NCBI GenBank assembly: GCA_038496445.1 | Contig: JALMLS010000122.1 | Span: 1-64,000, forward strand | Reading direction: 5' to 3' | Length of the DNA stretch: 64,000 nucleotides | Source: Trichosphaerium sp. ATCC 40318 | Taxonomy: Eukaryota; Protista; Tubulinea | Shown: positions 1-17,150 of the stretch, piece after piece | Position numbering within the stretch: position 1 is the first letter of the stretch | How the letters are laid out: the number at the start of each line of letters is the position of its first letter | Translations under genes and position numbers: made by a program | Notes under the pieces: generated by a model | Told to the model about the DNA's origin: nothing | Databases searched by the model: none | Seen by the model: only the letters and a program-made list of their open reading frames with translations

Positions 1-3000
1 CATAGCTTTATCAACATCTAGTTTTAGTATTGGTAAACTCAACATTGCACTGGTCAAAGGCCCAGTAATAGGCGTTGTAACAGCTGTTCCATGTGCAGCT
101 GATTGTACATCTTCTTCTTGTTGCTGTTGCACGTCCTTCTGATGAGTATCTGGTGTCTCAGCTTGTATCTGTTGGGTTGGTTTTGTGTGTAGGCAAACCG
201 GGCGTTGTAGGAGCTGTTCCGTGTGCAGCTGATTGTACATCTTCTTCTTGTTGCTGTTGCACGTCCTTCTGATGAGTATCTGGTGTCTCAGCTTATCTGT
301 TGGGTTGGTTTTTGTGTGGTAGGCAAACCTGACATTGTAGGAGCTGTTCCGTGTGCAGCTGATTGTACATCTTCTTCTTGTTGCACGTTACTGAGCAAGA
401 TTTATCTCTATGGTCGGTTCTTGCGAAGCCGTTAAATCAGGCGTTGTAGGAGCTGCACCATGTGCAGCTGATTGTCTTCTTCTTGTTGTTGCACGCTATC
501 CTGAGCATCTGTATCAAGATTTATCTCTCGGGTTGGTTCTCGTGAAACTGTTGTAGCAGCTGGTGAAGATGGCACATTTGTTGTCCTACGATGTTGTTCT
601 GGATTTTGAGCTCTGTCTTCATCTTGTTCTTTTTGTTGGTTTTCTTGTGTTGGAGCAGGTGCATTTGTAGGAGTGGTAGCATTGTTACCTTTAGTGGTGG
701 CAGCGGCAATGGCTTGAGCAGCGGCGAGCTTCAGCAGCAGCAGCAGCGACACGAGCTTCGGCAGCGGCAATGGCTTGAGCAGCGGCACGAGCTTCAGCAG
801 CGGCAGCAGCAGCACAGCGAGAATTGACATCTGTTGGTGGAGGATCAGCAGCGGCATCTGGTTGAGGGTTGGGCTCATGTGGTGGAAGATTAGTAGTGGC
901 ATCTGGTTGAGGGTTGGGTTCATGAGGAGGATTAGCAGTGGCATCTGGTTGAGGTTGGGTTCATGAGGAGGATTAGCAGTGGCATCTGGTTGAGGGTTGG
1001 GCTCATGAGGAGGATTAGCAGTGGCATCTGGTTGAGGGTTGGGTTCATGAGGAGGATTAGCAGCGGCATCTGGTTGAGGATTGGGTTCATGTGGTGGACC
1101 ATGTGCATCACGCTGACGACGAAGACGATGACGATGATTAGGAGGGGGTTGGTTATTGTCGATAATAGTGAAACGAAAGTCAGGATTGCTCAGCCTAAAA
1201 CGTGCAAGAGCAGCATTGAATGAAGCATTCATATGCCGAGTATCACGAGACCCATCAGGCATAATCCGTTGCTTGTGAATAACATCTAGATCATCAGCCA
1301 TCATATGTTTCTCATCGCTATCAGGTGTACTATAGTCCTCTGAACTGTCGGAACTGTCGTCACTGCCTCCCTCGATGATAGGTGGGTCAACATAGCCTGA
1401 AGGCATGTCTCCATCCCACTGTGGGTATTCATCAATGTGTTTTGTTGACTCTACCATCCTTTTAATGGTGGCTGCCATCGTTTTTGATGTGGGGAGTTTA
1501 TCACGGTATCGTTCTCTTCTTCGTTTCCCAAAAAAATCAACTACAAAAAAAAAAAAGAGAGTTAGTTACAAAGTTTCAAACAGTATTTTGTGGTGACGTA
1601 CGCATATTATTCTTGCCTCCCAAAGGATAAAATACATGATCTACAAAGCGAGCTACACTCACTAGGCTTACATTAGTGAAACTAGCCTCAAATCTTCCAC
1701 TCCATATGCCCGTTGCAAACAACAAGTCCAAATTAAAGCTTGCAGCATCTCGATACGCCCGTGAGCGAATTATTTCCATGCCTTGGTACGTCTCACCCAA
1801 ACGAAACTCTTCCATAATGTTGTGTATCTGCGTGTACAGTTAGGCCAAAAGAGAAAGATCGGTTTTGGGTTTGTTTAATCTACGTACATTGTCCAGTATG
1901 TGGTCACAACAGATAAATTTTCGTACAACAGCCCCTGCGTTTGACTTAACACGTCCTTGTCTAATTGCAAGCAACAGCTATAACCTTTATGAGTCCAACA
2001 AAGGGTGCAAAGGTTAAATAGAAACATACTTGGCTTGCAGCAATTGTGTTGTGACAGAACACTCTATTGGCAAATATCTTGTAGGGAAAGCCTGCCACCT
2101 TTACACCGTTTTCGAAAAGCTAAAAGAATGTCAGTCAATGTCAATGAACGTCCATAACGTACAATGTCCAACTTTGCTTCATGCTCTTTAAACAAGGTGA
2201 GGTTTTGTATCACAAAAAAACACGATTTCATAAACAGCTTTATTCCCTGTGGTTTAAAGATCTTGGATGCCTGTGAAATACACACAACATGTTTCTTTAG
2301 CTATAAACATTTAAAAGACTAAAAATACCTAGAGTGAAACACTGTACATACCTCGTGCCAGCGTTTATCATCAAGCAGATATTTTGGCTTCCAGTCTCTC
2401 CAACGTGGACGTGGTACTGTTTTGCCTTCTGCTTGTTGCTCTTTGGTGTAGTCTGCATGTAACCTTCTGAACTTCTTCCACAGCCTTTGTACCTTAATGC
2501 TGTATGTGTAGGGAACTACACACAAATTAGCTTTGTATAAAAGGGCAGCTCTTGTTAGTTCACCATACCGACTTGTTGCTGTATGTCGTTATCGTGTATA
2601 ATCTTGTCTAGCGCATTATGGTAGCCAGTGTACGGATTCAAGAAGGTGATGTTTTTTCAGTACCACACCGTACGCTTTGCATTTAAGGCTAATACATCTT
2701 GTTTAGTAGGTATTTGAGAAGAAGGCTACGCACGCAAAGTCAGCCAAACAGCAGTGTGCCCCATCTCCCAGTATGAGTGCGTCTGTACCTTTAACTTTCA
2801 CCCACATTGCCTTTGTCAATGAACGTGGAGTCTAATAAGCAAGTGAGTGTACACACTAATTGCAACAAACGTACCTGAATTACGAACAAAATTAACTTTC
2901 TGCAGAAAGTTTTTCAACGTGTAGTCTCTCACAGACAAAAAGCCAACCACATCAAAGAGATACCAAATCATATGCCGCATATATCTTTTGAGTTTTGGGG

Positions 3001-4033
3001 TTCTTGTTTTGTGTAAGGCGTAGTGTCTAATTTTTTTCAACTCTTCAAAGCTTAATAAAGATGTTAGAACTAATTTTTATCTTTCAAATTAAAAACAATA
3101 TGTTGTACGCCGGTATAATGGCCTTGTAATTCTGTAATGATTCCAATATCAGAGACATTTTATAATACTTTGTGGCAGCATATTGGTGTACAGGAGGAGT
3201 CAGTTGTTTGAGACAAAAGGCTCTAGCCAAGCGCCCTTTTTCAGCCAATATTCTGTATGTAAAAAACTTGGTGGTGCGCTCGTGAATGAAGGTCTCTGTC
3301 AAAACAGAAAGTTCGTCGTCCTTAACACGTTTCAAATTGATAACCTTGAACCAGTCGCGGTTGGGGTCTTGCAAAATGGTCAATGCATCGCTAAGAGTGG
3401 TTTGTTCCTAACATTAAATTAAAAACAATAGCAATCAAAAAAATGTAGTGTAGAAATGAGAAATATTACTTATGTACGTACTGCTGTGCCAGCGTCATGG
3501 CCACGTAGCTCTTCCTGTACCTCTTCTGTCAAACGGTTACGTAATATTTCTTTTATCTCCACTGGGTCGCGCAATTTGCCGTATGCACCGTGCTGTGTAA
3601 GTTTTAGCTCTCTAAAGGTGAGTTAACGTTAAAAATACAAAATCGAGGTTTTCAAAGGGCCAAGTTATACAAAACAACCACGTACTTGTAGAGCAAGTTT
3701 GTTTCTCCCTTCTTTGTTATCAAACTGTTCAAGTTTTCTGCATTCCAATGATTTAGCGTGTCCCCAGCCACAAACCTGCGTATGCGATAGTGGGTTTCCA
3801 AACAAGCTAATACAGGTAAAATACGTTAGTTTGTTAAAAAAAATAGACAAAACTAGACAACAGTGCAGTTTTTACGCCTGGCACGTTGTAAAAAGTTAAA
3901 GTAGTGAAAAAAACGCACGTGCGTTGCTGTCTATAATCCTCTCCTTATCTTGTTTGTACCAACTTGCTTCCAATGCAAGCCTACTAGCAAAGCACGGTAC
4001 ATCCATAGCATCTAGATTAACAACCGTTGACAT
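1..4033 (-). CDS. Large multi-exon orphan protein (gene A), 3'-partial, with low-complexity Pro/Gln/Ala repeat C-terminus; some apparent frameshifts
   Basis: ATG at 4033 (MSTVVNLDAMDVPCF...). GT-AG introns join ORF fragments 3665-3850, 3084-3383, 2816-3040, 2319-2525, 2064-2285, 1576-1815 and 432-1478. A frame is still open at the window edge. Frameshifts near 2650-2800 and ~955 (decay or assembly indels). Confidence 0.6.
60..500. repeat. Degenerate ~130 bp tandem repeats (about 4 units) in the coding tail of gene A
   Basis: Recurrent GTGCAGCTGATTGTACATCTTCTTCTTGTTG units near 93, 224, 354 and 463. Confidence 0.85.
835..1097. repeat. 42-bp coding tandem repeat (PPHEPNPQPDATAN, about 6 units)
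   Basis: Repeated GGCATCTGGTTGAGGGTTGGG(C/T)TCATGAGGAGGATTAGCAG. Confidence 0.9.
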
Positions 4034-5270
4034 ATACCTCTTTATTTTTGAGTTAAGTCACCCTAGCACTCAGTACAAGAAGCAAAATTCCACATTTACC
4101 ATTTCCTACCAATAAAAGCGCTTACATGTACCTTTAGCGCTGAAACCGAAAAAAGTGCTCACGTGAATTCACTTCAGTGAATACTAGCCTCGAAAACCGA
4201 ACTTTTGCTAGCAGCGCTGAATCTTTCTCAGGTACTTTGTTTTAGTCTTACGAACGTTTTTTAACCAGGTATACCATTCATAGAAAGTTAAAACGGTTAC
4301 CATGCCCTAAACACACTGCTTCCGTGCAAAACGGTGTGAACATGTGGAGACAAAAATACTTCGCTTTGTAAAGTGGCTGCCAACACACAAGCCCATACTT
4401 TACGCCTGCCATCAGCAAATGCAAGCTTACCCAACGACACCCAAGTATTTACAGCGATGTATACACTACTGTCGTTGCCCAGCAAACAACGCATCATGTT
4501 GCATGGCACGTGGAAAATGTTTTTCACTGAACAAGATTCTCGCTGGAGACGTGTTCAGTGAAACTGATATTAAACTTGTGCTGCACAAAATTGCGTGGTT
4601 GATGAGCGTGGTGCTACAAAACTGTTTTTGTTGTAACGCCACGCTCACCAACCATGTTTTATTTTGTTTTTCAAGCTCATAAAGCTTGGTCAACAATATT
4701 AAGCACTACGTTGGACCTTAAAACAACTATGAAGTGTGGTGAGCATGATTTACAAGCAATTACAGCTTGTACCGCATATTTGCGGCGAAATGCGAAAAAA
4801 CAGGTACAAACAAAGCTGAAACATCACGCAATGAGATGAAATCAACGCAAAGTGGTGAACCGGTACGTTGTAGCGCAATCCATCTTTTGTTGTCACTTGT
4901 GGTGGCAGTTTTGTACGTAACTAACCTTAGAATAGGCGCAGAAGCGCAAGGAGCAACAAACGGTACGTACTTTGTGCTAACAAGCAAATTTGTTTTTTTT
5001 TTGCTGATCTGCATTCGTTTGCATTGTATCCATCCTCTAATCACTAAATAGAAGCGTTTGCGATCATTGTGTTTAAGTTGATACCATCTTAACACAAACT
5101 TCATTACAAACACGGAGAACGCAACCACACACACTTGGGGCTTAATCGAACAAGTACGTTGTTTTTGAGCGCGGCGCAAATAGCGTATTGCAGCTCTAAA
5201 CGCTCAACTTTAGCTAGAAAAAAGTGCTGTGACCTCGTCTTTGCATATTCCGACGAGTTTGCGTTTAAAG

Positions 5271-7962
5271 ATGGCTGAAAACCCACCTGTACGATCAACG
5301 CGTTAGAAACCATCTCCTATCATTCTTAACTCTTTTTTAGGCATGCAAACGCCAAATGGGACTACAAAACTGTACGTAATTCTCTTTTCCGTTTTTATCG
5401 CTTTTACGGCGTCTACAACTCTAAAAAAGCAACAGCGCGAAAAAACCAACGGTTAGTTTTTTTTATGTGTTCGAAACAAACTGTACACCATTTCTTCTAC
5501 TTTTTCATTTCAGCGCCTTCTTGGCCGTTTTCAACGCCTTTTTCATCAAATTTTAGGCTAAAAACGCTTATTTCTTTTTAGATTTTACAGGTGTGAGCCT
5601 AATCGCTACACAAGACCCTGTAATCAACAGCGCCAACTCAATAGCAGAAAAAGATGCTTTGCTGTTGCCCATGGACATTGTACGATTAGAGGGCTTCATA
5701 ACGTCCAGAGATGTCCTGTCCCCTGAAGAAAAACAGTAATACCTTTGCTACTGCCTTCACTCACTTGTTTAGGTTAATTGGCCCTTTTCATGGCAGTTCA
5801 GACCTAGTACTAGCTCACGAAGGTTCAAAGTTGTACGTACAGAGTTTTATTTTCCTTCTTCTTTTCTTGTTTACATGCGTTATTACAATTACACATTTCT
5901 GCTGTGCTTGCAGCTGTAGTTAGCGTGACATTGATTATCTCTCTGTTGCACGTTGCCTCACTGATTATTCTTTGGGGTTGAATCTACGCTGTGTTGCTTG
6001 TAATGGCTTGAGTGTTTTGTTTTCTCTCTTTTCTGCTTTTGAATTGCCTTTTGGATGTCACCCAACTACATTGAGCAGGACATTGATCATCTCTGTCCTG
6101 TGTTGTGCCCATTGATCATCCTCTGGGACTGAACGTGTTCGTTGTGGTGCCGTTGTAGAGTATTTTTCACGTTGGCAACATCATTTCTTGTTTTATTTTG
6201 CGTTTTTCTTCTATTGTATTTCACCTACCGCTTTCTTATTTACTTTATAGTCCTCTGCAACAATTTAAAGACCAATTGGAAGCTATAAACCCCTCATCAC
6301 CGACCTCACTGTTGAAAGCCATAAGCGACGTGTTTGATATGTTTGATGACACACGAGATATGCCTTTGAAAGTGCAGTAATAGAAGAGTTGATGATACCG
6401 ATGAAAGCAGAGCAAAAACAGTTAATACACCAAACATTGGTACGGTAGATGTATCTCCTGTAGCCACGGTGCTTATTGTTTGAGGTAGAGCCAACATTTG
6501 GACTTTTTATATGCCAATTACAACGCTTGCTACTACTCTCCTAGCCAACGTAAGCGCATGTTGGCGGCCTGTTTTCTTTTTTATCGGTATTGTTTCGATT
6601 TCTAAAGTGAATAGATAGATACTTACTGTATTTTTAGCTTGTTGTATAAACCTGGCCTGACATCTAGACACAGAAGAAGTAGAAAAGTGAGAGAGAAAAA
6701 GAAGCAGCTTGCAGCTTGGGTACTGACAAACAGTGCATTCTATTCTTTATTAGGACTTTTTGTGATAACACTACGCTTTAGAGCCATTTCCAAGCGGTGT
6801 ATTTTTTACGTGTCAACTGCAGTTTGTGCAACGATTCCGCCAAAACGGTTCCCTTTGGCAACAAGGTGGCCGATAGCGTCTTTTTTAACAACCACTATCC
6901 CATATGCACTTACGGTTATGGCGATGAGGACAGTTACAGGCAAGCACCACGCCATTCGTCAAACAGATGCTTACTTTTGGTAGCAAGTCCAAGTTGAAGA
7001 TAATCACCGTTGGTTACAATGGCTCTCTAAGAGATAATCGCCTCAAAGGTGATTTAAAAAAGTTGCACAAAGGTTACGTGGACGACTCTAATGGCATCTC
7101 ACTGGCAGCTGCTGCGGAGCTGAAGCGATTGGCCAACCACTACTTCGATGAGGTACTAAAGAGATGCTGCAACACAACGCGTATACTAACACCTGTTACA
7201 AGCCATCACCGCCAAGTATGTATGGAAGGGAAAAACCCAAAAGGTACAGCACTTTGGGTCACTCCTATTACCGCCTTTACACCTTGGGTTTGGATCTGCT
7301 GAATTGCAGTTATGACACTGAGAAGGAAAACAGAGCGTTACACTTGGATTTGCTGTGTGCATACGCTACCAATCCTCACTGGGGCAAGGTCTCGGACGCT
7401 TGGAAGATGAGCGACAAATCCACGAAAGCCTGCAAAGCATTTCTTCAGAACAAAGGTGTGCTTGCTTTTCTTTTTTTTTTTGTTTTGTTTTATTTACCAT
7501 TTCAATCACCAACCCCTCTTCAAGGAGCAAGAGAGTACCTGGCGCAGAGATTTCACCCATTGGCAGTCAACAGGTTACGTCAATTGAACCCTCACGTAAT
7601 GTTCACTGGCCTTCATGAACAATGGCTTAAATTATTGCCAGGCACTCCTGTCTACAAATGGAAGCATTTGATCATGGTACTTGCACATTTTTGTGGCTTT
7701 AAACTGCGTGTATACCCAAAAAACTCATTCCATTTAGATCCAAAAAGAAGTGAAATCTATACAAGTGCTTTGTACAGTGTTGCGCTGGCCCGTGCTTAGC
7801 GATCCCAACCAAAAGAAACAACACCACTGCATAGTGTTCAACATAGCGCCTTGTCAACAACCTTTTGGATGCATGAAGTACGAGCAAATACCTTTTCTAG
7901 TGCGAACATACTACAAGCCAGAGATTGAAAAGTTTTTAAAAGAGTACAACTATACTAAATAA
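5271..7962 (+). CDS. Multi-exon protein with a C-terminal domain resembling bacterial UDG-superfamily proteins
   Basis: Spliced model MAENPP|ACKRQMGLQN|...|...YPICTYGYGDEDSYSKSKLKIITVGYNGS...NHYFDE|...NCSYDTEKENRALHLDLLCAYATNPHW...LRQLNPHVMF...YNYTK*. Introns include 6940-6983 (GC-AG) and 7153-7202 (TACTAAC branch point). One apparent frameshift near 6350. Confidence 0.6.
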
Positions 7963-8468
7963 ATACATTTCCCCAAAAAAAGTGCTACTTTAGTTTTTTT
8001 AGCCTACAAAAGCTGCATAAGAGACGATCTATGACTTGAACACATTTATTTACTACAGGTGACTATTTTACAGAGGCTACACCACGACACACAACTATTA
8101 TGGAGCGTACGTATAACGATCAGCAAAAAAATTAACGGTTTTTTTTAAAATTATTTTCAAAAAACGATAAAACGCAATAATACCGTTTCGTACCGTATTA
8201 GCGCTACAAACCTTCTTTTTACCTTTTAAAATTATTAGTTTTTTGCCCCTTTTTTCTAAAAACATGTTTTTCTTTTCATTGTCCTGTTAAAAAGTGCACT
8301 TACTGGTGTTTACCTACAAGAGCGTGCTTAAGAGTCGTATGTACATACTAACAACTTCTCCTTGTAGGTGATCCCCCACCAAATGTAAATTTCTCAAATC
8401 CTGGATCTTTGAGACTCGTCTTCAAAGTAATAGATGGTCATGTTACTGTATCCTTAGTAAAACACAAC

Positions 8469-9432
8469 ATGGCACAATTTTCCTATAGCGAATCTGGTAT
8501 AGACGATTCACAAATGGACATAGATGACCCTGGCTCAGACTCAGACTCAGACTTTCGCTCAGACTCAGACTCAGACTTTCACTTTGACTCTGACTCAGAC
8601 TCTGACTCAGACTCAGACTCAGAATCAGACTCAGACTCTGACTCAGACTTTCACTTTGACTCTGACTCAGACTCTGACTCTGATTCTGACCGTGACTCTG
8701 ACTCTGACTACGTACCGTCAGGTTCTACAACTTCGGACTATAGCCAACTTCATGGAGATGACTCCGACTCTGATGACACACCGTCAAGTTTTACAACGGT
8801 TTCGCCTATGTCTACAGCTACACCAAGTACTACGTACGTTTGGTAAGACAGAACACTGTTCTTACTTTCTTGTCAGCACAGAAGATGCCAGCACAGAAGA
8901 TATACAAGAACACCTGCGGAAAAAATTTGCAAATGCTCCAGAAGCGTACATCAAAGTTGACCCAGTGTTCCCTGGGTTTTATGAATTAATAGCTCATCTA
9001 ACAAACGCTACCCCTACACCTACACCTATAACAGATACTGCGCACGTTTGGTAAGACAGAACAATGTTCTTACTTTCTTGTAGTGGATCTGACAGTGCAG
9101 AAGATTCAGATGAACAGCAACTTTCAAATGCTCCAGAAGCCTACATCCAAGTTGATTCTGACTCTGACGCCAATAAGACACCCTCAGGTGCTACAACGGT
9201 TTCACCACCTAGACAAAACACTACGCACGTTTGGTAAAACGGAACAATGTTCTCATTTTCTTGTAGTGGATCTGACGACGCTTCAAGCTTTGAAATTACA
9301 ATTCTTCACTCAGGTGACGAAGCAGAACCAATGCAGGGACAAGACCATAGCCCTGACATTCAGTCACAGGAGGAGGAGGAGGAAGAAAAAGTAGTTGACT
9401 TCTCTGTATTTTTATATTCACAATCAGAATAG
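8469..9432 (+). CDS. Ser/Asp-rich acidic low-complexity protein, 4 exons built by exon+intron duplication
   Basis: [13 protein letters not shown]..., (SD)n tract at 8535-8710, three near-identical phase-2 introns, NAPEAYI(K/Q)VD repeated in exons 2 and 3, stop at 9430-9432. Confidence 0.7.
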
Positions 9433-9561
9433 AAGAAAAAAAAAAAAGCTACACAACAATAAACTTTTTTTTAAAAATTAATTAGCTTTACTTTTTATTG
9501 GCATAGATTTACACTTATCACATTGACCAACAGGTGAAGCTACCACAATCTATCACTCACT

Positions 9562-10509
9562 TTAAGCCCTATCATCTTCCTCCCAACACCTCTTACTCTT
9601 CCGTGCGCCTTTCTCGTACTCGTCCTGCCTCTTTAAACGCCCACTTTCATACCACTCGGTGTACTTGCCATGTGGTCTACCGTAAGCGTACGCACACTGT
9701 GAAACCAGGTTGCCACCCTCATAACAAAATGACCATCCATGTCGCTTGTTGTACCGGTACTGTTTTATATATCGCAGCGTTTGGTCGTTGTTCCACTTTG
9801 TGACCAATCCGTGTTTGCAATCGGTAGAATGTTGCACAGACCTTGCACCTATTTTATTGATACAACCGTAGCATTTGGGTGAAATGGCATTTTCTAGCAA
9901 ACTGGAGATCATCTTTCTGTTCATTGGGTGTGGAACAACAACTTCGCTATCTGTTGGACGATTGTATATCAGCTCTTCGCGCCCACCAAGATGGTTGAAC
10001 AGGTGCAAAACCTTCACATACATCTTACCACCATCTACACAGATTTTGTACGCGCAAGTGACTTCTTGTGACTTTATCTCATACATCTCTAGTTCAATGA
10101 GATAGCTGGTATCGTTCATTGTTTCTGTTGGATACGTTACTCGGAAAGCGCTCAGCATTCGCCCTTTGTAGTAACTCACAGCCAGGTCCACACGCTTGAA
10201 TCCATCGTAAGTTATACAATCTCCATGCATTTGCCCATTTACAAAGTTGAATAGCCTACTCTCAGATCTCCACATGCCGTGCTTATTCCAGTTTTCGTCA
10301 AAGCGTAAAAAGGAAAGCTGGCTATCCAAAAGCGGCCACACTTCGTTCACTTTCAAGTCCAATTCCATTATCATCATCTTTAATTCTGTTGGCAAAGTCA
10401 GCAGTGTTCGAGCCTACAAAAGACGAAAAAACAAGGTAAGGATTCATAGCAAGCCAAAATCTCTCCATCTCACCTTGGTGTTGCCGCTAAACCTCTTTTT
10501 AGCTGCCAT
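9562..10509 (-). CDS. F-box-like + MORN-variant repeat protein
   Basis: Exon 1 10474-10509 (MAAKKRFSGNTK), intron 10414-10473, then LLTLPTELKMMI (F-box-like) and MORN_2-like repeats (HGKYTEWYESGRLKRQDEYEKG). Confidence 0.8.
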
Positions 10510-10833
10510 CTGTGATGTTCAGTGTTATAGATGGGTGTTTATTAATTATAAACAATTGCTGCAACTAAGAATGATGTAATTCTTACATAGTTTTTTTGTA
10601 GATTTTCTGGATTGTACATTGGAGTTTTATAGGAAAAGCCACGTGATAGTATGTTTTTTTTTTTCCTTTTAAGTCAACACTAATTCACCACAGTGTAGTT
10701 TTATTAACATATAATCGATCGATTCTTGCGCTAGAAGGCTTCAGGTATGTAGTACTGGTATCTCCCTTCTTTTCTTTTACCTTTGCGCTTAATACCAGTA
10801 AATTAGACTTATATGTCGTTCTTTAGTTACATT

Positions 10834-13800
10834 ATGAGCAAAAAAGTATATCCCACAAGGCTGTGCCCCATGTGCCACAAAGAATTTTCAACACACAACT
10901 TTTCAGCACACTTGCATACAAAAAGTCACCAGGCAAACGTTTTGGCGAAGCTGTGGGAAGTGCGCTCATCCAATAGAGAGCCACCGAACAAAAAAGCACG
11001 CACCAGCGATGATGTTGCTTACGATGAAGTGCTACATGCCAGTGAACAAGTTCAACAACAACAATTGATGCAAAATACCACAGAACCAGAACCTCAACCA
11101 GAACCTCAACCAGAACCTCAACCAGAACCTCAACCACAACCTCAACCACCGCTGCCATTAATGGAGCAAACATTCGTACAGTCAGACATGCTTTACGAAG
11201 CTGGTGATCTACTAATGGAAACGGAGACACAGTGTGTAGATAGGTGTTTAGCCGTTGGCAGGCCATTTCTCTCTATTAGCACTGCTTCATCAGAAGAGAA
11301 GGTCTTGTACCTTGCTAAAAAACTCCAATTGGAACAACAGCTGTCTAATGAAAACATGCAACTCTGGTTCAAATTTATATCGTCCGTGTCAACGCTTGTG
11401 GGAAACGCAGAAAACACAGAAGGTGAAAAGGCCTTCAATTATGAGCATTTGACAAACGACCGAGCCAACAAAGCCTTCAATCTGGTACTTCTCATGACCT
11501 CTTTTCCTCTTTTAGCTCACTTGCTTTACCAGTACACTCCTACGATAGAGCTCAGCACCATGCACGTAAGGACCAGTGCCACAAAAACCAAAGAACTCTT
11601 ATATGTGCAGCCGTCCCAGTATGTCAAGCTGCTCATGTCTCACCTGGTAGACAGAAATGCTATAAACGACACATCCAAGTATGGCTGCACTATACCTAGA
11701 GTGAATATGGACGGTGAGGAAGAGCAAATCCACGTGGTGGCCGGTCCAGAAACGGGAAAGCGCTACAAAGAACTTTTTGATGACGTTGAGAAGATAGAGG
11801 AAAACATCAGACTTGCAGGTACAACTTTTGTTGCAGTTTTTTTGTTCCCCTCCTCAAGCCAATGACCGTTGTGTAGCCTACCTGTGTCACGACAACTTCA
11901 CTTACGATAAGAGAGACAGTCTAGGACCCTTGTATTTTGTTATATGGAACTTGCCTAACAGTGAAACAATGCAAGGGATAATGCCTTTGATGGTATTGCC
12001 GGCACAAGTGAACATGGAAGACGCTGCAAAGTATGTCGTTGACGATTTGAAATCGCTGTACAACGGCATAGAGTGTTACTCACAACCCTTGGAAAAGGTG
12101 AAAAGCACGTTTATTTCTTTCTTTTAACGACAAAATAGACTTTCAAAGTGTACGTCAGGTTGGAGAAGATATTGGGGGACATACCTGGAATATGCAAACT
12201 CTTGAGTACGGTCTTGTTATTGTGTACTTTGCGTGCCATTCACCTCATTTTCTCAAAGGTATAAAGAACCACGCTTCGAAGATGCCTTGTAGAGTTTGCA
12301 AAGTATCCAGCAAGAACATCAAACTAGGTATCATGGATGTTTGCGAGGATAGAAATATGACGGACACCAGAGTGTTGAAAGCTAGACTGAGTCAGGCGGA
12401 AGAGGAAAAGCTCAACATCCTCTGTTTGAGAGCTTGGGTAATGGAACTTGTTTTTTGCCTCTGCAATTTATGCCCGTTTTCTTCTAAAGCTTGCATTTTA
12501 GAGTCCATTTTTGGATTTACCTGGCTTTGACATCTACCATCACACCCCTTATTGTCCTTTTCACAATATCATTCTGGGAGTGTCTAAAGCTATGATCAGC
12601 GCCACTGTAGAACTGCTGCAACAGCGTATGGTAGATTACAAGAAAAAGTTGAGAGAAAAAGTAGCCTGGTACTTGCACCAAAAGCACGTGCACGTCATCA
12701 AGTAATGCAAACGGTTTGGTTGCTTTGCGCTCATGCGACTGTAGAACTAAGGACCTTTGGGACAGCCATGGAGAGCTTGATACTGAGCGTGGCTGGGATG
12801 GTACTGACTTCAAATCCTTTCTGCAGATGGCTTTGTTCGTTTTAAAACCGTATTGTACCAAGGACGAGATGTCCGTGTGGTGAGTGTAGTTTTTTGGGTT
12901 TTTTTGGCTGGAATGTTTGTGACCTTCTATTGAAGGAAAGTTTTCTTGGGTTATGTGGCCCTGATTTCTAAGGACTTTTTGCGTACAACGAGGTTGAACG
13001 AGTTCACGACCGAGGCTGCGAGGTTGTTGAACCTGATGCAAAAGCATTTGCCAGGTACCTGTCATTATTGTGGTGATTGGCTGCTATCTAACTCTATCTT
13101 CCATAGGAGCAAAAACCTCTATACCCAACTTTCACGCGCTGTTTCACCACTCGAAACACGTCGAGATGTTTGGCATGCCCAAACACTACAGGTAACGGCA
13201 TTCTGTTTGTTGGGTGCTGACTGGGTTTTTTTAAAGCACTTACGCTTGTGAATCCAGGCACAAAAGGATAAAGAACTGGAAGAACTCCACCAATGGCTTG
13301 CACAAAGAAAAGTGAGAAATATTAGGTCCGTGTTGAGCTGACGCCGATTGCTAGTGACATCATGAAGCGTGAGGCGGCTTTGTTTGCCTCTAATGTGGCT
13401 GCGGATCTGGCCACCTCATTGGTGAGTGTAGGAAAGCCACCTGCTGGTAGAAAAACGTACTTTGGACACGAGGTGACCGTGCCCAAGTTTTACAACATCC
13501 CACAGGCGTCTTGGACTTTGCGTGAGCGCCCTCTTCTCTCATTCTTTTGTTTGCTGATCTGTTTCGCGCAGATAACGCTAAAAAAGTGCAACTCACAAAG
13601 CGACTGAGAGACATCTGGTTGAGGGACATTGCCCAGGAGCATCACAGACAACTGGATAGCAGTGTGGTGATGTATAAATCGGCCAAGTGCGAATCTAGAG
13701 AGATTGCTCTGTTTACAAACACTGAGACTTGTTTCAAATCCTGGAGACCTATTCATGGTGAGGACAGAAGTAACTGCATTTATTTGGAGACGACCAACAT

Positions 13801-14129
13801 TATAAGGATGAAAGAGGAAATTTACGTGTTTGGCAGGTAAAGTTGCTGTGCTTTTATTATAATCACATTGCTGCTGATAAATCTCTTTACAATGTAGGTT
13901 GTATAAACTGGTAAATCAGATAGATAGGTATGACAAACTCACTGACTTGGTTATGTGCGTTGAGTGGTGTTTTCTTGGTTTTGTTGACATCAGTTGCAGG
14001 TTGGAGAGAGCTGGCGACCTTGCTTGTGTACCTTTGAGCATGGTGTTTAGGCTTGCTTGTGTTGTGCCTGATCCTTGTGAACCTGAGCACTATTTGGATA
14101 ACTACTATCAGCGTGCAATACCAAATTGA
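10834..14129 (+). CDS. CACTA/CMC (EnSpm/Plavaka-like) DDE transposase with N-terminal C2H2 zinc finger, multi-exon
   Basis: CPMC..HLHTKSH zinc finger, then HDNF..SLGPLYFVIWNLP (first D), LGDIPG (second D), PCRVC, PFHNIILG, FHALFHH and STYACESRHK (E). This is the D-D-C2C-xH-H(3-4)H-E order known for CMC transposases. Confidence 0.85.
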
Positions 14130-14205
14130 TGGCGATAGCTTTGTACATGATTACATGTAAGTTTAGAATAAAATTTCATGAGGCATGTTTTGTTTGCCAA
14201 AAGTC

Positions 14206-14347
14206 GAATTCCATATGAATTTATATTTTGAGTTGGGGTTTTGTAAATGACCTATATTCTGATTCGATATGAAATCCACTAATCTGTGTATTTCCACAAG
14301 ATTTCAGATAGAATTCATCATGAATTCCATATTTGAAATTGGTACTG
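14206..14347. repeat. Subterminal short repeats at the putative right end of the CMC element
   Basis: GAATTCCATAT at 14206 and 14322, with variants GATTCGATATGAAAT (14261) and GATTTCAGATAGAATT (14300), ending in ...AATTGGTACTG. Confidence 0.5.
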
Positions 14348-14926
14348 AAGGCACCTGTTGTAGCATCATACCGTACTAATTCAAACACACAATATGATTG
14401 GGCGACCTTTGTTGTGTACCTTTTAGAACACAATCATTTGGTTGCTGGAGATTATTTTGTGGTGGACAATGCTCGTGTCCACAGTGCCAAAGAAACTTTT
14501 TCAGAGATATATGAAGCTTGTGCTTTACGAGGAGTACACTACATATTTCTGCCAAAGTATTCTCCGGAACTCAACCCATGTGAACTTGTTTTCGCTCACA
14601 TAAAGAACCATTTGCGTTACAGACGCCGAAATGATACTTTTTGGTATGAAATAGCCAAAACAATGGCTACTGTAACTAGAGAGCTTGTAGAAAGTTTCTA
14701 TGATCATTGTGTACACATGCGTTTTTAAAATAAATAAAATTTGTTATTTTGTACACGTGGGTTTTTTTTTTTTCTTGGAAGTGTTCTCTGGCTTCCGCAT
14801 CACCTTGAAATTTGAATATTTTTGTCAGTTAACCGGTTAGCATAGAAATTTAGAAATTTTCACCAGATAACTAATTTTCGTGCACAACCAGTTAAATTTT
14901 GACCAACTTGACTGAAACGGACAATA
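14348..14926 (+). mobile_element. 5'-truncated IS630/Tc1-mariner transposase (DDE_3 C-terminal part) with possible right terminus
   Basis: ORF 14333-14728 contains VVDNARVH...FLPKYSPELNPCE (38 residues between D and E). The first D and the HTH are missing. Downstream sequence ends ...GAAACGGACAATA just before a poly-A tract. Confidence 0.8.
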
Positions 14927-14927
14927 C

Positions 14928-14928
<1 letters not shown>

Positions 14929-14982
<54 letters not shown>
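14929..14982. repeat. Poly-A tract (~54 nt)
   Basis: Direct reading. Confidence 0.95.
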
Positions 14983-14987
<5 letters not shown>

Positions 14988-15462: not shown

Positions 15463-15572
15463 TGTCTACAGTCGGTTAGTTGATAGAAAAGAGGAGACAA
15501 AGTGCAATAACTCTAACTAGTGTTTATTAAATACACAAACTTGCCCCATTTACTGTAACTTTACATTTGTAG

Positions 15573-17150
15573 TTAAAAACTATGTATTTTTGCCCCGATA
15601 AGTGCTTTAATACCTTCATCAGTAACTGAAGTGTTTGTGAGGTGAATCTTATGAACTCCAACAAGTGCTTTAATGCCTTCGTCAGTTACTGAAGTGTTAT
15701 TGAGGTTAATAGTATGAACTCCAGCAAGTGCTTTAATACCTTCATCAGTCACTGAAGTATTTTTGAGGTTAATCTTATGAACTCCAGCGAGTGCTCTAGC
15801 GCCTTCATCAGTTGTTAAAGTGTTATCAAGGTCAATTGTATGAACTCCAGCAAGTGCTTTAATGCCTTCATCAGTAACTAAAGTGTTTGTGAGGAAAATA
15901 GTATGAACTCCAGCAAGCGCTTTAATACCTTTATCAGTAACTGAAGTGCGACAAAGGCCAATAGTATGAACTCCACCAAGTGCTTTAATACCTTCATCAG
16001 TTACTGAAGTGCCATTGAGGCGAATGGTATGAACTCCAGCGAGTGCTTTAACGCCTTCATCAGTTACTGAAGTGCTTATGAGGGAAATAGTATGAACTAC
16101 CTTTAGTGCTTTAATACCTTCATCAGTCACTGAAGTGTTAGCAACGTGAATAGTATGAACACCAACAAGTGCTTTAATACCTTCATCAGTTACTGAAGTG
16201 CTATAGAGGGATATAGTATGAACTCCCTTCAGAGCTTTAATACCTTTATCAGTAACCGAAGTGCGAGCTAGGTCAATGGTATGAACTCCACCAAGTGCTT
16301 TAATGCCTTCATCAGTTACTGAAGTGTTATAGAGGGATATAGTATGAACTCCAGCAAGTGCTTTAATACCTTCATCAGTTACTGAAGTGCCATTGAGGCG
16401 AATGGTATGAACTCCAGCAAGTGCTTTAACACCTTCATCAGTTACTGAAGTGTGACAAAGGTCAATAGTATGAACTCCCTTCAGTGCTTTAATACCTTCA
16501 TTAGTTACTGAAGTGAAATTGAGGCAAATGGTATGAACTCCAGCGAGTGCTTTAACGCCTTCATCAGTTACTGAAGTGTGACAAAGGTCAATAGTATGGA
16601 CACCAGCAAGTGCTTTAACGCCTTCGTCAGTTGCTGAAGTGCGACAAAGGTCAATAGTATGGACACCCTTCAGTGCTATAACGCCTTCGTCAGTTACTGA
16701 AGTGCGACAAAGGTCAATAGCATGGACACCCTTCAGTGCTTTAACGCCTTCATCAGTTACTGAAGTACGACAAAGGTCAATAGTATGGACACCCTTGAGT
16801 GCTTTAACGCCTTCGTCAGTTACTGAAGTGTTATTGAGGGAAATAGTATGAACTCCAGCAAGTGCTTTGACAGTGTTGTCATAAAAATAAGGTACTGAGA
16901 TTTTTGTGTATTTAAGAATCCCAGGATGTTTTACAGCTGATTTTGCTTGAGTTGGCGTTTTAATCGTAATAGCGTGGTATCCAATAATATCGTGAATAAT
17001 AGAAGCAAGCAAATGACATGTCTGACAAGCTGCAAATCGCGATTTGGTCGTTTGGCGTAAGATATGCGCTAATATCTCGGTCGGTAGCTGTAGCAAACTT
17101 GTGCTGGTGGTACTGTCAATTCTACAACCCTTTGAGGTAGAAAGCATCAT
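15573..17150 (-). CDS. F-box + 20 x 21-aa leucine-rich repeat protein (intronless)
   Basis: LLQLPTEILAHIL F-box and GVHTIxLxxTSVTDEG(V/I)KALx repeats. Confidence 0.92.
   Translation of the reverse strand: MMLSTSKGCRIDSTTSTSLLQLPTEILAHILRQTTKSRFAACQTCHLLASIIHDIIGYHAITIKTPTQAKSAVKHPGILKYTKISVPYFYDNTVKALAGVHTISLNNTSVTDEGVKALKGVHTIDLCRTSVTDEGVKALKGVHAIDLCRTSVTDEGVIALKGVHTIDLCRTSATDEGVKALAGVHTIDLCHTSVTDEGVKALAGVHTICLNFTSVTNEGIKALKGVHTIDLCHTSVTDEGVKALAGVHTIRLNGTSVTDEGIKALAGVHTISLYNTSVTDEGIKALGGVHTIDLARTSVTDKGIKALKGVHTISLYSTSVTDEGIKALVGVHTIHVANTSVTDEGIKALKVVHTISLISTSVTDEGVKALAGVHTIRLNGTSVTDEGIKALGGVHTIGLCRTSVTDKGIKALAGVHTIFLTNTLVTDEGIKALAGVHTIDLDNTLTTDEGARALAGVHKINLKNTSVTDEGIKALAGVHTINLNNTSVTDEGIKALVGVHKIHLTNTSVTDEGIKALIGAKIHSF

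Follow-up and report, generated by a model that had tools for sequence, protein, structure and literature searches.

The first 14,347 nucleotides of the window, the 64,000-nt stretch of DNA analysed here, which begins at the start of its contig (C165), are probably the right part of a ~17.7-kb, recently active DNA transposon with a CACTA/Plavaka-type transposase. The full element measures ~17,683 bp, with its left 3,336 bp off the window. A 12-exon transposase gene lies beside its right end, and the ~14 kb from there to the left end hold further genes, which are orphans (Table 1). Giant elements of such type are already known, so that what is new here is the lineage and not the kind of element. 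The CpG observed/expected ratio is unremarkable, at 0.70 for the element and 0.87 for the remainder of the window.

Table 1 Features of the element and of its right flank in the window.
Feature	Position	Strand	Basis and remarks
Element, right-hand 14.3 kb	1..14347	+	C448 copy ends at the same base; left arm in C560, C184 and C412
Tandem arrays: 130-nt unit (71-384), 42-nt unit (839-1098)	71..1098	.	Just inside the C165 start; at the C448 start; ~1.1 kb more of the 130-nt array in C184
"Gene A", 348-codon ORF with Pro-rich 42-nt repeats	432..1478	-	ORF list
Segment absent from the C560 copy (internal-deletion derivative)	1553..3342	.	Copy comparison
"UDG-like" gene region, ORF pieces only	5271..7962	+	Label unsupported
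Ser/Asp-rich repeat gene	8352..9391	+	Three similar exon-plus-intron units, each ending ...TTTGG/GTAAGA; repeat families D2, D9, D16, D19
Orphan accessory ORF ("F-box/MORN"), 283 codons	9565..10413	-	ORF list; identical in C448
Spliced transposase gene	10813..14129	+	12 exons, 11 GT-AG introns of 38-61 nt, 935 codons; boundaries in the 3' half uncertain
First catalytic Asp motif CHDNFTY (11885-11905), then WNLP, exon 2	11885..11965	+	Motif reading
Second catalytic Asp motif LGDIPG (12172-12204) and C(2)C motif MPCRVC (12282-12305)	12172..12305	+	Motif reading
H(3)H motif NFHALFHH (13127-13150) and putative catalytic Glu ACESRH..K..TN (13244-13294)	13127..13294	+	Motif reading against PMC12730594
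Right subterminal region, three GAATTC-containing repeats	14206..14347	.	GAATTC word count
Right terminal inverted repeat, 22 nt, 5'-CAGTACCAATTTCAAATATGGA	14326..14347	-	Identical to the left tip (22/22)
Target: final 579 bp of a Tc1/IS630-like (DDE_3) element, outside the transposon	14348..14926	+	Pfam; intact copies

Ends, copies and target sites

A sequence-only reading of the window had proposed one large element that ends at position 14347 and continues leftward past base 1. A search for other copies bore out that right boundary. Positions 1–13731 of contig C448 align to window positions 839–14347, including the upstream genes, and the alignment halts exactly at ...GGTACTG in both, with unrelated sequence beyond. 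The two copies differ by 64 substitutions over 13.5 kb (~0.5%), about 13 of them between 6500 and 14347. Only these two genomic places share the right-end sequence, and each copy interrupts a sequence that is intact elsewhere. In the window, the break falls 2 bp before the 3' end of an apparent intron of a Tc1/IS630-like element. The ORF at 14333–14728 matches positions 60–139 of the 146-position Pfam DDE_3 profile, and intact 3.2-kb copies of the Tc1/IS630-like element (C374:22776–25984 and C537:5469–8676) read straight across the breakpoint, confirming the suspected junction into the middle of another transposase. The C448 copy interrupts a Ras-family GTPase gene (Pfam Ras above cut-off) that has nine intact paralogues. 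Uninterrupted paralogous sites exist for both right junctions. As candidates for empty alleles of the window locus, C374 and C537 were ruled out because their flanks beyond the Tc1 element differ. Pfam LRR and F-box matches fall on a neighbouring host gene and not on the element.

The tips of the element, 5'-CAGTACC...GGTACTG-3' (CAG...CTG), form a perfect 22-nt inverted repeat, with 84% identity across a 44-column tip alignment. The left terminus, which had been predicted to lie upstream of base 1, was found 3,336 bp to the left of it: there the right tip recurs in inverted form with all 22 nt identical, once in C560 and twice in C184. From there the left arm runs unbroken into window positions 1–1553 (C560) and 1–1478 (C184), and the same 3,336-bp arm is held by C412 (25,601 bp, read to position 12443). 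The left tip has four different flanks, one each in C560 and C412 and two in C184. Genome-wide, the 26-nt tip at ≤3 mismatches occurred eight times in 70 Mb, each time at a boundary, and a control pattern did not occur at all. No further tip was found in the window with 26-nt and 16-nt queries at ≤3 mismatches, in agreement with the earlier observation that the window holds no left terminus. The subterminal repeats described at the right end were also recovered: GAATTC words number three in the right 140 bp and 11 in the left 450 bp, with two elsewhere in the ~17-kb interior, and a 23-nt subterminal unit is present in 14.5 copies in the left arm.

These ends bear on the alternative that only ~3.7 kb (roughly 10.6–14.35 kb) is transposon, the upstream genes being host DNA and C448 a haplotig or segmental duplicate. 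The two copies are indeed near-identical, like alleles, and many small contigs in the assembly resemble alternative copies. However, neither a terminal motif nor a GAATTC cluster was found near 10.6 kb or anywhere in 1–14321, the matching inverted tip lies 3.3 kb to the left of base 1, and the right flanks of the two copies are unrelated, each copy interrupting a different known sequence. This explanation is highly improbable and has largely been refuted already. The 13.5 kb common to C165 and C448 (about 99.5% identical) has different flanks in each, and the upstream genes thus moved along with the transposase, probably as part of the single large element that had been proposed.

For the 17.7-kb transposon, we envisage that the transposase would bind the tips and subterminal repeats, cut out the whole unit and reinsert it, with the extra genes moving as part of the element and a target duplication of probably 2 bp. 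A length of 2 bp is in line with a different, 930-bp CAG...CTG miniature element that is nested in the C184 copy and has a clean 2-bp duplication (TT), and with the mirror pair in C184, which has AT on either side. Shorter derivatives probably exist too, namely the C560 copy with its internal deletion and, in C184, the mirror pair that consists of left arms only. The dinucleotides next to the tips are AT, GA, AT and AT at left ends and AA and TT at right ends; none of the four left flanks matches either right flank, so the expected target-site duplication of 2–3 bp was not recovered. Likewise, the 5' half of the Tc1/IS630 ORF, which had been proposed as a search target, is missing from the assembly together with the left half of the interrupted Ras gene, both of which would be expected to adjoin a left tip, and only intact copies were found.

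The unpaired flanks and missing partner junctions could also be accounted for if the arms belong to one family of which no intact 17.7-kb unit moves. The right and left-arm blocks would then be rearranged or one-ended fragments, spread by segmental duplication, ectopic recombination or aberrant transposition, or would partly be assembly errors in a repeat-rich region. Among the contig sequence read, no contig carries both ends, and the assembly holds five left-type tips vs only two right-type tips. C184 has a tandem duplication of flank and left arm plus a mirror-image copy; the terminal part of C560 is scrambled; and in C9 the C560 site has a remnant of a left end, truncated and decayed. We nevertheless consider this alternative rather unlikely. 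The right blocks stop exactly at the tip in two unrelated targets, which is predicted by transposition and not by segmental duplication, and no internal tip lies between the arms. The contig breaks coincide with tandem arrays and with repeats to either side of the missing junctions, so that no rearrangement is needed to explain the gaps, and C412 has room for 14.7 kb of the element and may be one of three unscored candidates from the copy search. A mobile 17.7-kb unit is the reading that we favour.

A putative CMCT transposase

The sequence-only reading had described an apparently complete CMC transposase. This was borne out in part: a GT-AG spliced frame of 935 codons joins every motif-bearing piece and is intact in the window and C448 copies, which differ by three synonymous and three conservative changes and by a 2-bp indel in an intron. 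The family name found no match among Pfam families, PDB entries or database proteins. Gene models that maximised ORF length were discarded, as they skipped conserved motifs. The predicted protein has a C2H2-like zinc finger at its N-terminus, and a 53-nt intron separates the LGDIPG and MPCRVC motifs.

The CMCT clade comprises EnSpm/CACTA, Mirage, Chapaev, Transib, Plavaka, ESTA as well as Lanisha, and its traits are the motifs D, D, C(2)C, H(3)H and E in that sequence, 5'-CA...TG-3' termini with inverted repeats, and a 2–5 bp target-site duplication (PMC12730594, Kojima 2025). The motif order in the window fits this definition by motif reading and not by a statistical test, and the tips of the element have the 5'-CA...TG-3' form with terminal inverted repeats. 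In the ESM Atlas, the look-alikes of catalytic exon 2 were Transposase_21 clusters (0.92; 156 shared features) and the RAG1 RNase-H (0.89); a second query, a 67-residue exon, gave a weak Transposase_mut lead (0.86). The motif reading and one language-model lead suggest that the protein is a CMCT transposase.

Sequence searches used single exon pieces as queries. With these pieces, Pfam returned neither a Transposase_21 (PF02992) match at E ≤ 1 nor a Plavaka (PF18759) match, and PDB sequence searches, made with five pieces of the element including "UDG-like" ones, returned nothing. A six-frame search of the whole genome with PF02992 found no match, and as 14 control genomes were silent too, this is weak evidence of absence; the same applies to the whole-genome search with the PF18759 Plavaka model, for which the controls were also silent. 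Searching the catalytic exon against 1.84 billion representative proteins with phmmer gave no informative match; it returned a spurious repeat protein and, from an ENA metagenome contig, a fragment of 76 residues. Within the genome, exon 2 has at least 22 paralogues with 39–66% amino-acid identity. The transposase is very divergent, and standard profiles miss it.

Accessory genes

The block had been called cargo-carrying. Extra genes do lie inside the element, and "cargo" overstates the case: the genes are orphans with no detectable host paralogue and may be the element's own accessory genes, which is more likely than that they are newly captured host genes. A Pfam search with 40 ORF or stop-to-stop pieces, taken from the element including its left arm, gave only sub-threshold zinc-finger and MORN_2 matches inside the element, and no dioxygenase or other recognisable accessory enzyme was found there.

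Two of the functional labels given earlier found no support, and the ORFs that carried them are present. The "UDG-like" pieces had no Pfam or PDB match, and a word-index search with the 215-residue piece found no homologue. For the 283-codon ORF labelled "F-box/MORN", the MORN_2 match is sub-threshold (17.6 bits vs a Pfam cut-off of 29.6), Pfam gave no F-box match, and a word-index search found no homologues; its single-sequence AlphaFold model (pLDDT 33.7) was unusable. The Ser/Asp-rich gene had no Pfam match and has diverged paralogues in C595 and C87. From gene A, more minus-strand ORF pieces extend into the off-window left arm, and extra partial copies with only the left arm are found in C184 and C560.

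It is conceivable, and in our judgement quite doubtful, that the orphan genes serve a deep and so far undescribed CMCT lineage as a dedicated accessory module, perhaps an anti-silencing or DNA-modification system that includes a glycosylase-fold protein, in keeping with the earlier "UDG-like" label. Its counterparts would be the TET/JBP genes in fungal transposons and the PAG genes in red-algal Plavaka elements, although its own protein families would all be new.

Significance and comparison with known giant transposons

With this element, the few giant multi-gene DNA transposons of CACTA/Plavaka type on record gain a recently active protist example of ~17.7 kb. For annotators, roughly six "genes" in the block belong to the transposon and not to the host, and two sequences, the Tc1 element and the Ras GTPase gene, have been freshly interrupted by insertion. 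The movement and decay of very large cut-and-paste elements could be studied on the near-identical copies, on the derivative with the internal deletion and on the left arms in mirror image, and the orphan accessory genes may supply functions that aid the persistence of such elements.

EnSpm/CACTA elements are characterised by the Pfam Transposase_21 domain, 5'-CAC(TA) tips, a 3-bp target duplication and subterminal repeats. Those of plants and fungi resemble the present element in several ways: the tips are CA..TG and form an inverted repeat that is short and perfect, short subterminal repeats are densely arrayed at either end, the motifs D, D, C(2)C, H(3)H and E come in that order, and the elements are large and carry extra genes. 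In contrast, their tips read CACTA and not CAGTAC, no significant Transposase_21 match was obtained here, and the duplication of the present element is more likely 2 bp than 3 bp.

The ESTA and Plavaka lineages likewise have divergent CMCT transposases that are barely linked to EnSpm by sequence search, and their 2-bp-class duplications can be likened to that presumed for the present element (PMC12730594), whereas no TA duplication is seen at its ends. Plavaka tips, TGT..ACA or CATCA..TGATG (PMC12730594), are unlike the CAGTAC tips found here. Fungal transposons that have genes for TET/JBP dioxygenases carry an extra gene thought to counter silencing (PMC12730594), and share with the present element the carriage of extra genes, whereas no dioxygenase was detected in it.

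Giant Plavaka elements (EnSpm/CACTA superfamily) of 17.4–19.1 kb have been described in the red algae Bostrychia moritziana and Chondrus crispus (bioRxiv 10.1101/2025.02.11.637652). The present element, at about 17.7 kb, is in the same size class, and also has one DDE transposase gene with several accessory genes between the ends, and internal tandem or inverted repeat arrays. It differs in its host and in a transposase that does not reach the Pfam Plavaka model. The red-algal PAG1–3 include recognisable DNA methylase/SET and 2OG-oxygenase-like proteins, whereas the accessory ORFs here matched no Pfam family. The red-algal elements make up a third of the genome, compared to a handful of copies here. 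With comparable elements already published, the present one opens no new category.

Boundaries of the element

From sequence alone, the right terminus of a putative giant transposon had been placed near 14347, with an immediate junction into the middle of a different transposase. Both points were borne out by a second copy. In BLAST searches, the first 13,731 bp of C448 (23,145 bp), another contig of the assembly, matched window positions 839–14347 with identities of 97.7–99.3% (gaps counted) and 64 substitutions in total, of which ~13 fell within 6500–14347. The alignment ended at the identical base in both contigs, after ...AATTGGTACTG, and the flanks beyond it were different. To the right of 14347, the window contains the terminal 579 bp of a Tc1/IS630-like element, and the ORF at 14333–14728 matched only profile positions 60–139 of 146 of Pfam DDE_3 (53 bits). 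In C448 the block is followed by the 5' portion of a gene for a Ras-family small GTPase, broken within its P-loop codons; two exons of the Ras-family gene exceeded the Pfam Ras cut-off. Uninterrupted relatives of both targets were found. The 3.2-kb Tc1/IS630-like element is intact in contigs C374 and C537, across the breakpoint ...TTAAAAC/AAGGCACC, and nine intact Ras-family paralogues run through ...CAGTACAAAG/TTTGTC. The same block ending at the same base, in two sequences that are unrelated and elsewhere uninterrupted, is the hallmark of insertion. The right boundary at 14347 is real.

The Tc1/IS630-like (DDE_3) copies in C374 and C537 have inverted ends of ~200 bp each and an apparent intron of ~51 nt, and the breakpoint lies 2 bp short of the 3' end of this apparent intron. 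Both copies are at other loci and were rejected as empty alleles of the window locus. The Ras-family genes form a group of at least nine copies with 80–98% identity, several of them paired on one contig (C271, C181, C379, C201 and C160 among the relatives), and the transposon-split gene in C448 is one further copy.

The element was also predicted to extend to the left of base 1, and its left end was located on other contigs. With up to three mismatches allowed, the 26-nt tip occurred eight times genome-wide, compared to zero for a control pattern. These were two right ends, five tips of a left-end type and one tip of another family (C286). The left-type tips matched the first 22 nt of the right tip exactly and diverged thereafter. 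In contig C560 (window orientation), the tip is followed without a break by 3,336 bp and then by window 1–1553; window 1553–3342 is internally deleted, and the copy continues to 4357 at the contig end. Contig C184 carries the tip, the same 3,336 bp and window 1–1478 at 6791–12788 (97–99% identity), and a mirror-image copy (19938 down to ~14643) has the same layout up to a 130-nt repeat array. The full 3,336-bp arm is also present in C412 at ~100% identity. Since the sequences outside the left tip are unlike among C560, C412, and C184, this tip is a true boundary. The inverted tip thus lies 3,336 bp to the left of base 1, contiguous in C560 and C184, and the composite is 17,683 bp long. Within the window, the tip had no second match besides the right end.

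Coordinates of features of the element, its copies and its interrupted Tc1/IS630-like target
Feature	Location	Strand	Remark
CHDNFTY then WNLP	11885–11965		transposase motif, by reading
LGDIPG	12172–12204		transposase motif, by reading
MPCRVC	12282–12305		transposase motif, by reading
NFHALFHH	13127–13150		transposase motif, by reading
ACESRH..K..TN	13244–13294		transposase motif, by reading
Pro-rich repeat ORF	432–1478	minus	348 codons; further minus-strand pieces in left arm
Ser/Asp-rich gene	8352–9391		three repeated exon-intron units
Open frame	9565–10413	minus	283 codons
Left-type tip	C560:5952	minus	
Left-type tip	C412:10918		
Left-type tip	C184:6791		
Left-type tip	C184:14488		164-bp fragment
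Left-type tip	C184:19938	minus	
Intact Tc1/IS630-like copies	C374:22776–25984; C537:5469–8676		99% identity
Truncated Tc1/IS630-like copy	14348–14926		then 57-nt poly(A) run, 14927–14983

Unit size and related copies

The two tips were identical at 22 of 22 nt and 84% identical over a 44-column alignment. Of the GAATTC words, 11 lie in the leftmost 450 bp, three in the rightmost 140 bp and only two in the remaining 17 kb; in the left arm, a subterminal unit of 23 nt is repeated 14.5 times. Judged by these sequences, the two ends look like the ends of one element. A left terminus near 10.6 kb, which would refute the single large block proposed earlier, was looked for. Neither a tip nor a GAATTC repeat cluster was found near that position, so the proposed block stood on this point.

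Among the contigs read, none carried both tips, and the assembly contains five left-type tips versus two right-type tips. The assembly (70.3 Mb in 642 contigs, from an intron-containing eukaryote) lacks the left halves of both interrupted targets, the Tc1 copy and the Ras gene, and the dinucleotides beside four left tips (AT, GA, AT, AT) and the right tips (AA, TT) showed no left-right pairing. Contig C165 is 142 kb long, with the window as its first 64 kb, and both C165 and C448 start in or beside the tandem arrays of the element. With repeats on both sides of the missing junctions, assembly breakage is a sufficient, albeit not proven, explanation for them. The 25,601-bp C412 may carry ~11 kb of the window block. 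Two observations hint at a 2-bp target duplication: the C184 mirror pair has AT on either side, and a 930-bp CAG...CTG miniature element is bracketed by a clean duplication of TT. The predicted left junctions would be ...AAAACAA(G) for the Tc1-like left half and ...ACAAAGTT(T) for the Ras-gene half, each abutting CAGTACC. We consider it probable that the element is a single 17.7-kb unit. The element is recently active.

Several nested, rearranged or decayed sequences were observed. The miniature element, with CAGGGCTGAAAC... inverted ends, is inserted among one copy's left subterminal repeats at C184:18739–19667, and C374 has its first 60 nt as well. In the complex at C184:5039–19940, a 1.75-kb flank and a 6-kb left arm are tandemly duplicated; the second duplicate is broken at 164 bp and joined to the mirror-image left arm, with AT beside both outer tips. 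Either aberrant transposition or an error of assembly could account for this arrangement. In contig C9, the homologue of the C560 insertion site (C9:723043–726781) has only a decayed left-end remnant (element positions 49–422, 88% identity, tip replaced), which adjoins a duplicated segment of the flank. An older fragment of element positions 5294–6536 (90–96% identity) was found at a contig end, C398:25268–26628, and C398 also has repeated flank sequences common to C560 and C9. Between copies, differences were concentrated at window 4000–4499 (96 of 389 differing alignment columns), and 121 nt at the end of C560 are a scrambled form of this stretch, which may be hypervariable or hairpin-prone, or may represent read-end noise.

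Transposase and other genes

A GT-AG spliced frame through all transposase motifs was obtained by dynamic programming, with 12 exons, 11 introns of 38–61 nt and 935 codons from an ATG at 10813 to a stop at 14129. In the C448 copy, three synonymous and three conservative changes were seen, along with an indel of 2 bp within an intron. By reading, the motifs follow the order D, D, C(2)C, H(3)H, E, which is the signature of the CMCT clade (EnSpm/CACTA, Mirage, Chapaev, Transib, Plavaka and ESTA, as well as Lanisha), together with CA..TG tips and 2–5-bp duplications (Kojima, PMC12730594). As a lead pointing the same way, the first catalytic exon resembled Transposase_21 clusters (0.92) and RAG1 RNase-H (0.89) in the ESM Atlas, and a second exon gave a weak Mutator-type lead only. 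No stop-to-stop piece at 10.8–14.1 kb matched Pfam, and the transposase pieces had no match in a PDB sequence search. Six-frame searches for Transposase_21 and Plavaka across the entire genome had no match, and control genomes were equally silent. With the best exon as phmmer query, 1.84 billion representative proteins yielded only two hits, a spurious repeat protein and a metagenomic fragment of 76 residues. Exon paralogues at 39–66% identity were present in at least 22 further places in the genome, showing that the exon belongs to a real family. The apparently complete CMC transposase of the sequence-only reading stood as an intact spliced frame with the CMCT motif order, while its family name found no support in Pfam, PDB or database searches. 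The putative CMCT assignment combines the motif reading with one lead, from single exons.

The other genes were nearly unaltered in both right-part copies. None of their open frames had a Pfam family above threshold, word-index searches found no homologues of the 283-residue ORF or of a 215-residue piece of the region earlier called 'UDG-like', and the 'UDG-like' pieces had no PDB relatives; a single-sequence structure model was unusable. The labels 'UDG-like' and, for the 283-residue ORF, 'F-box/MORN' were thus unsupported. Diverged paralogues elsewhere were found for the Ser/Asp-rich gene only, and no indication was seen that any of these genes is a single-copy host gene. The label that fits them is 'orphan'.

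A host gene at window 15475–17150 (minus strand, 525 codons) encodes an N-terminal F-box (Pfam F-box-like, 3e-5) followed by ~20 tandem 63-nt leucine-rich repeats (LRR_6, 1.4e-33), with units of 21 residues at 75–83% identity.

Comparison with known large elements

In the red alga Bostrychia, giant Plavaka elements of 17.4–19.1 kb carry three accessory genes and make up one third of the genome (bioRxiv 10.1101/2025.02.11.637652), and TET/JBP genes are carried by fungal CMCT, KDZ and other transposons (PMC12730594). The element described here works alike. However, its transposase lies beyond current profiles and its gene set is wholly orphan. It is classed as a new lineage of a kind already known.
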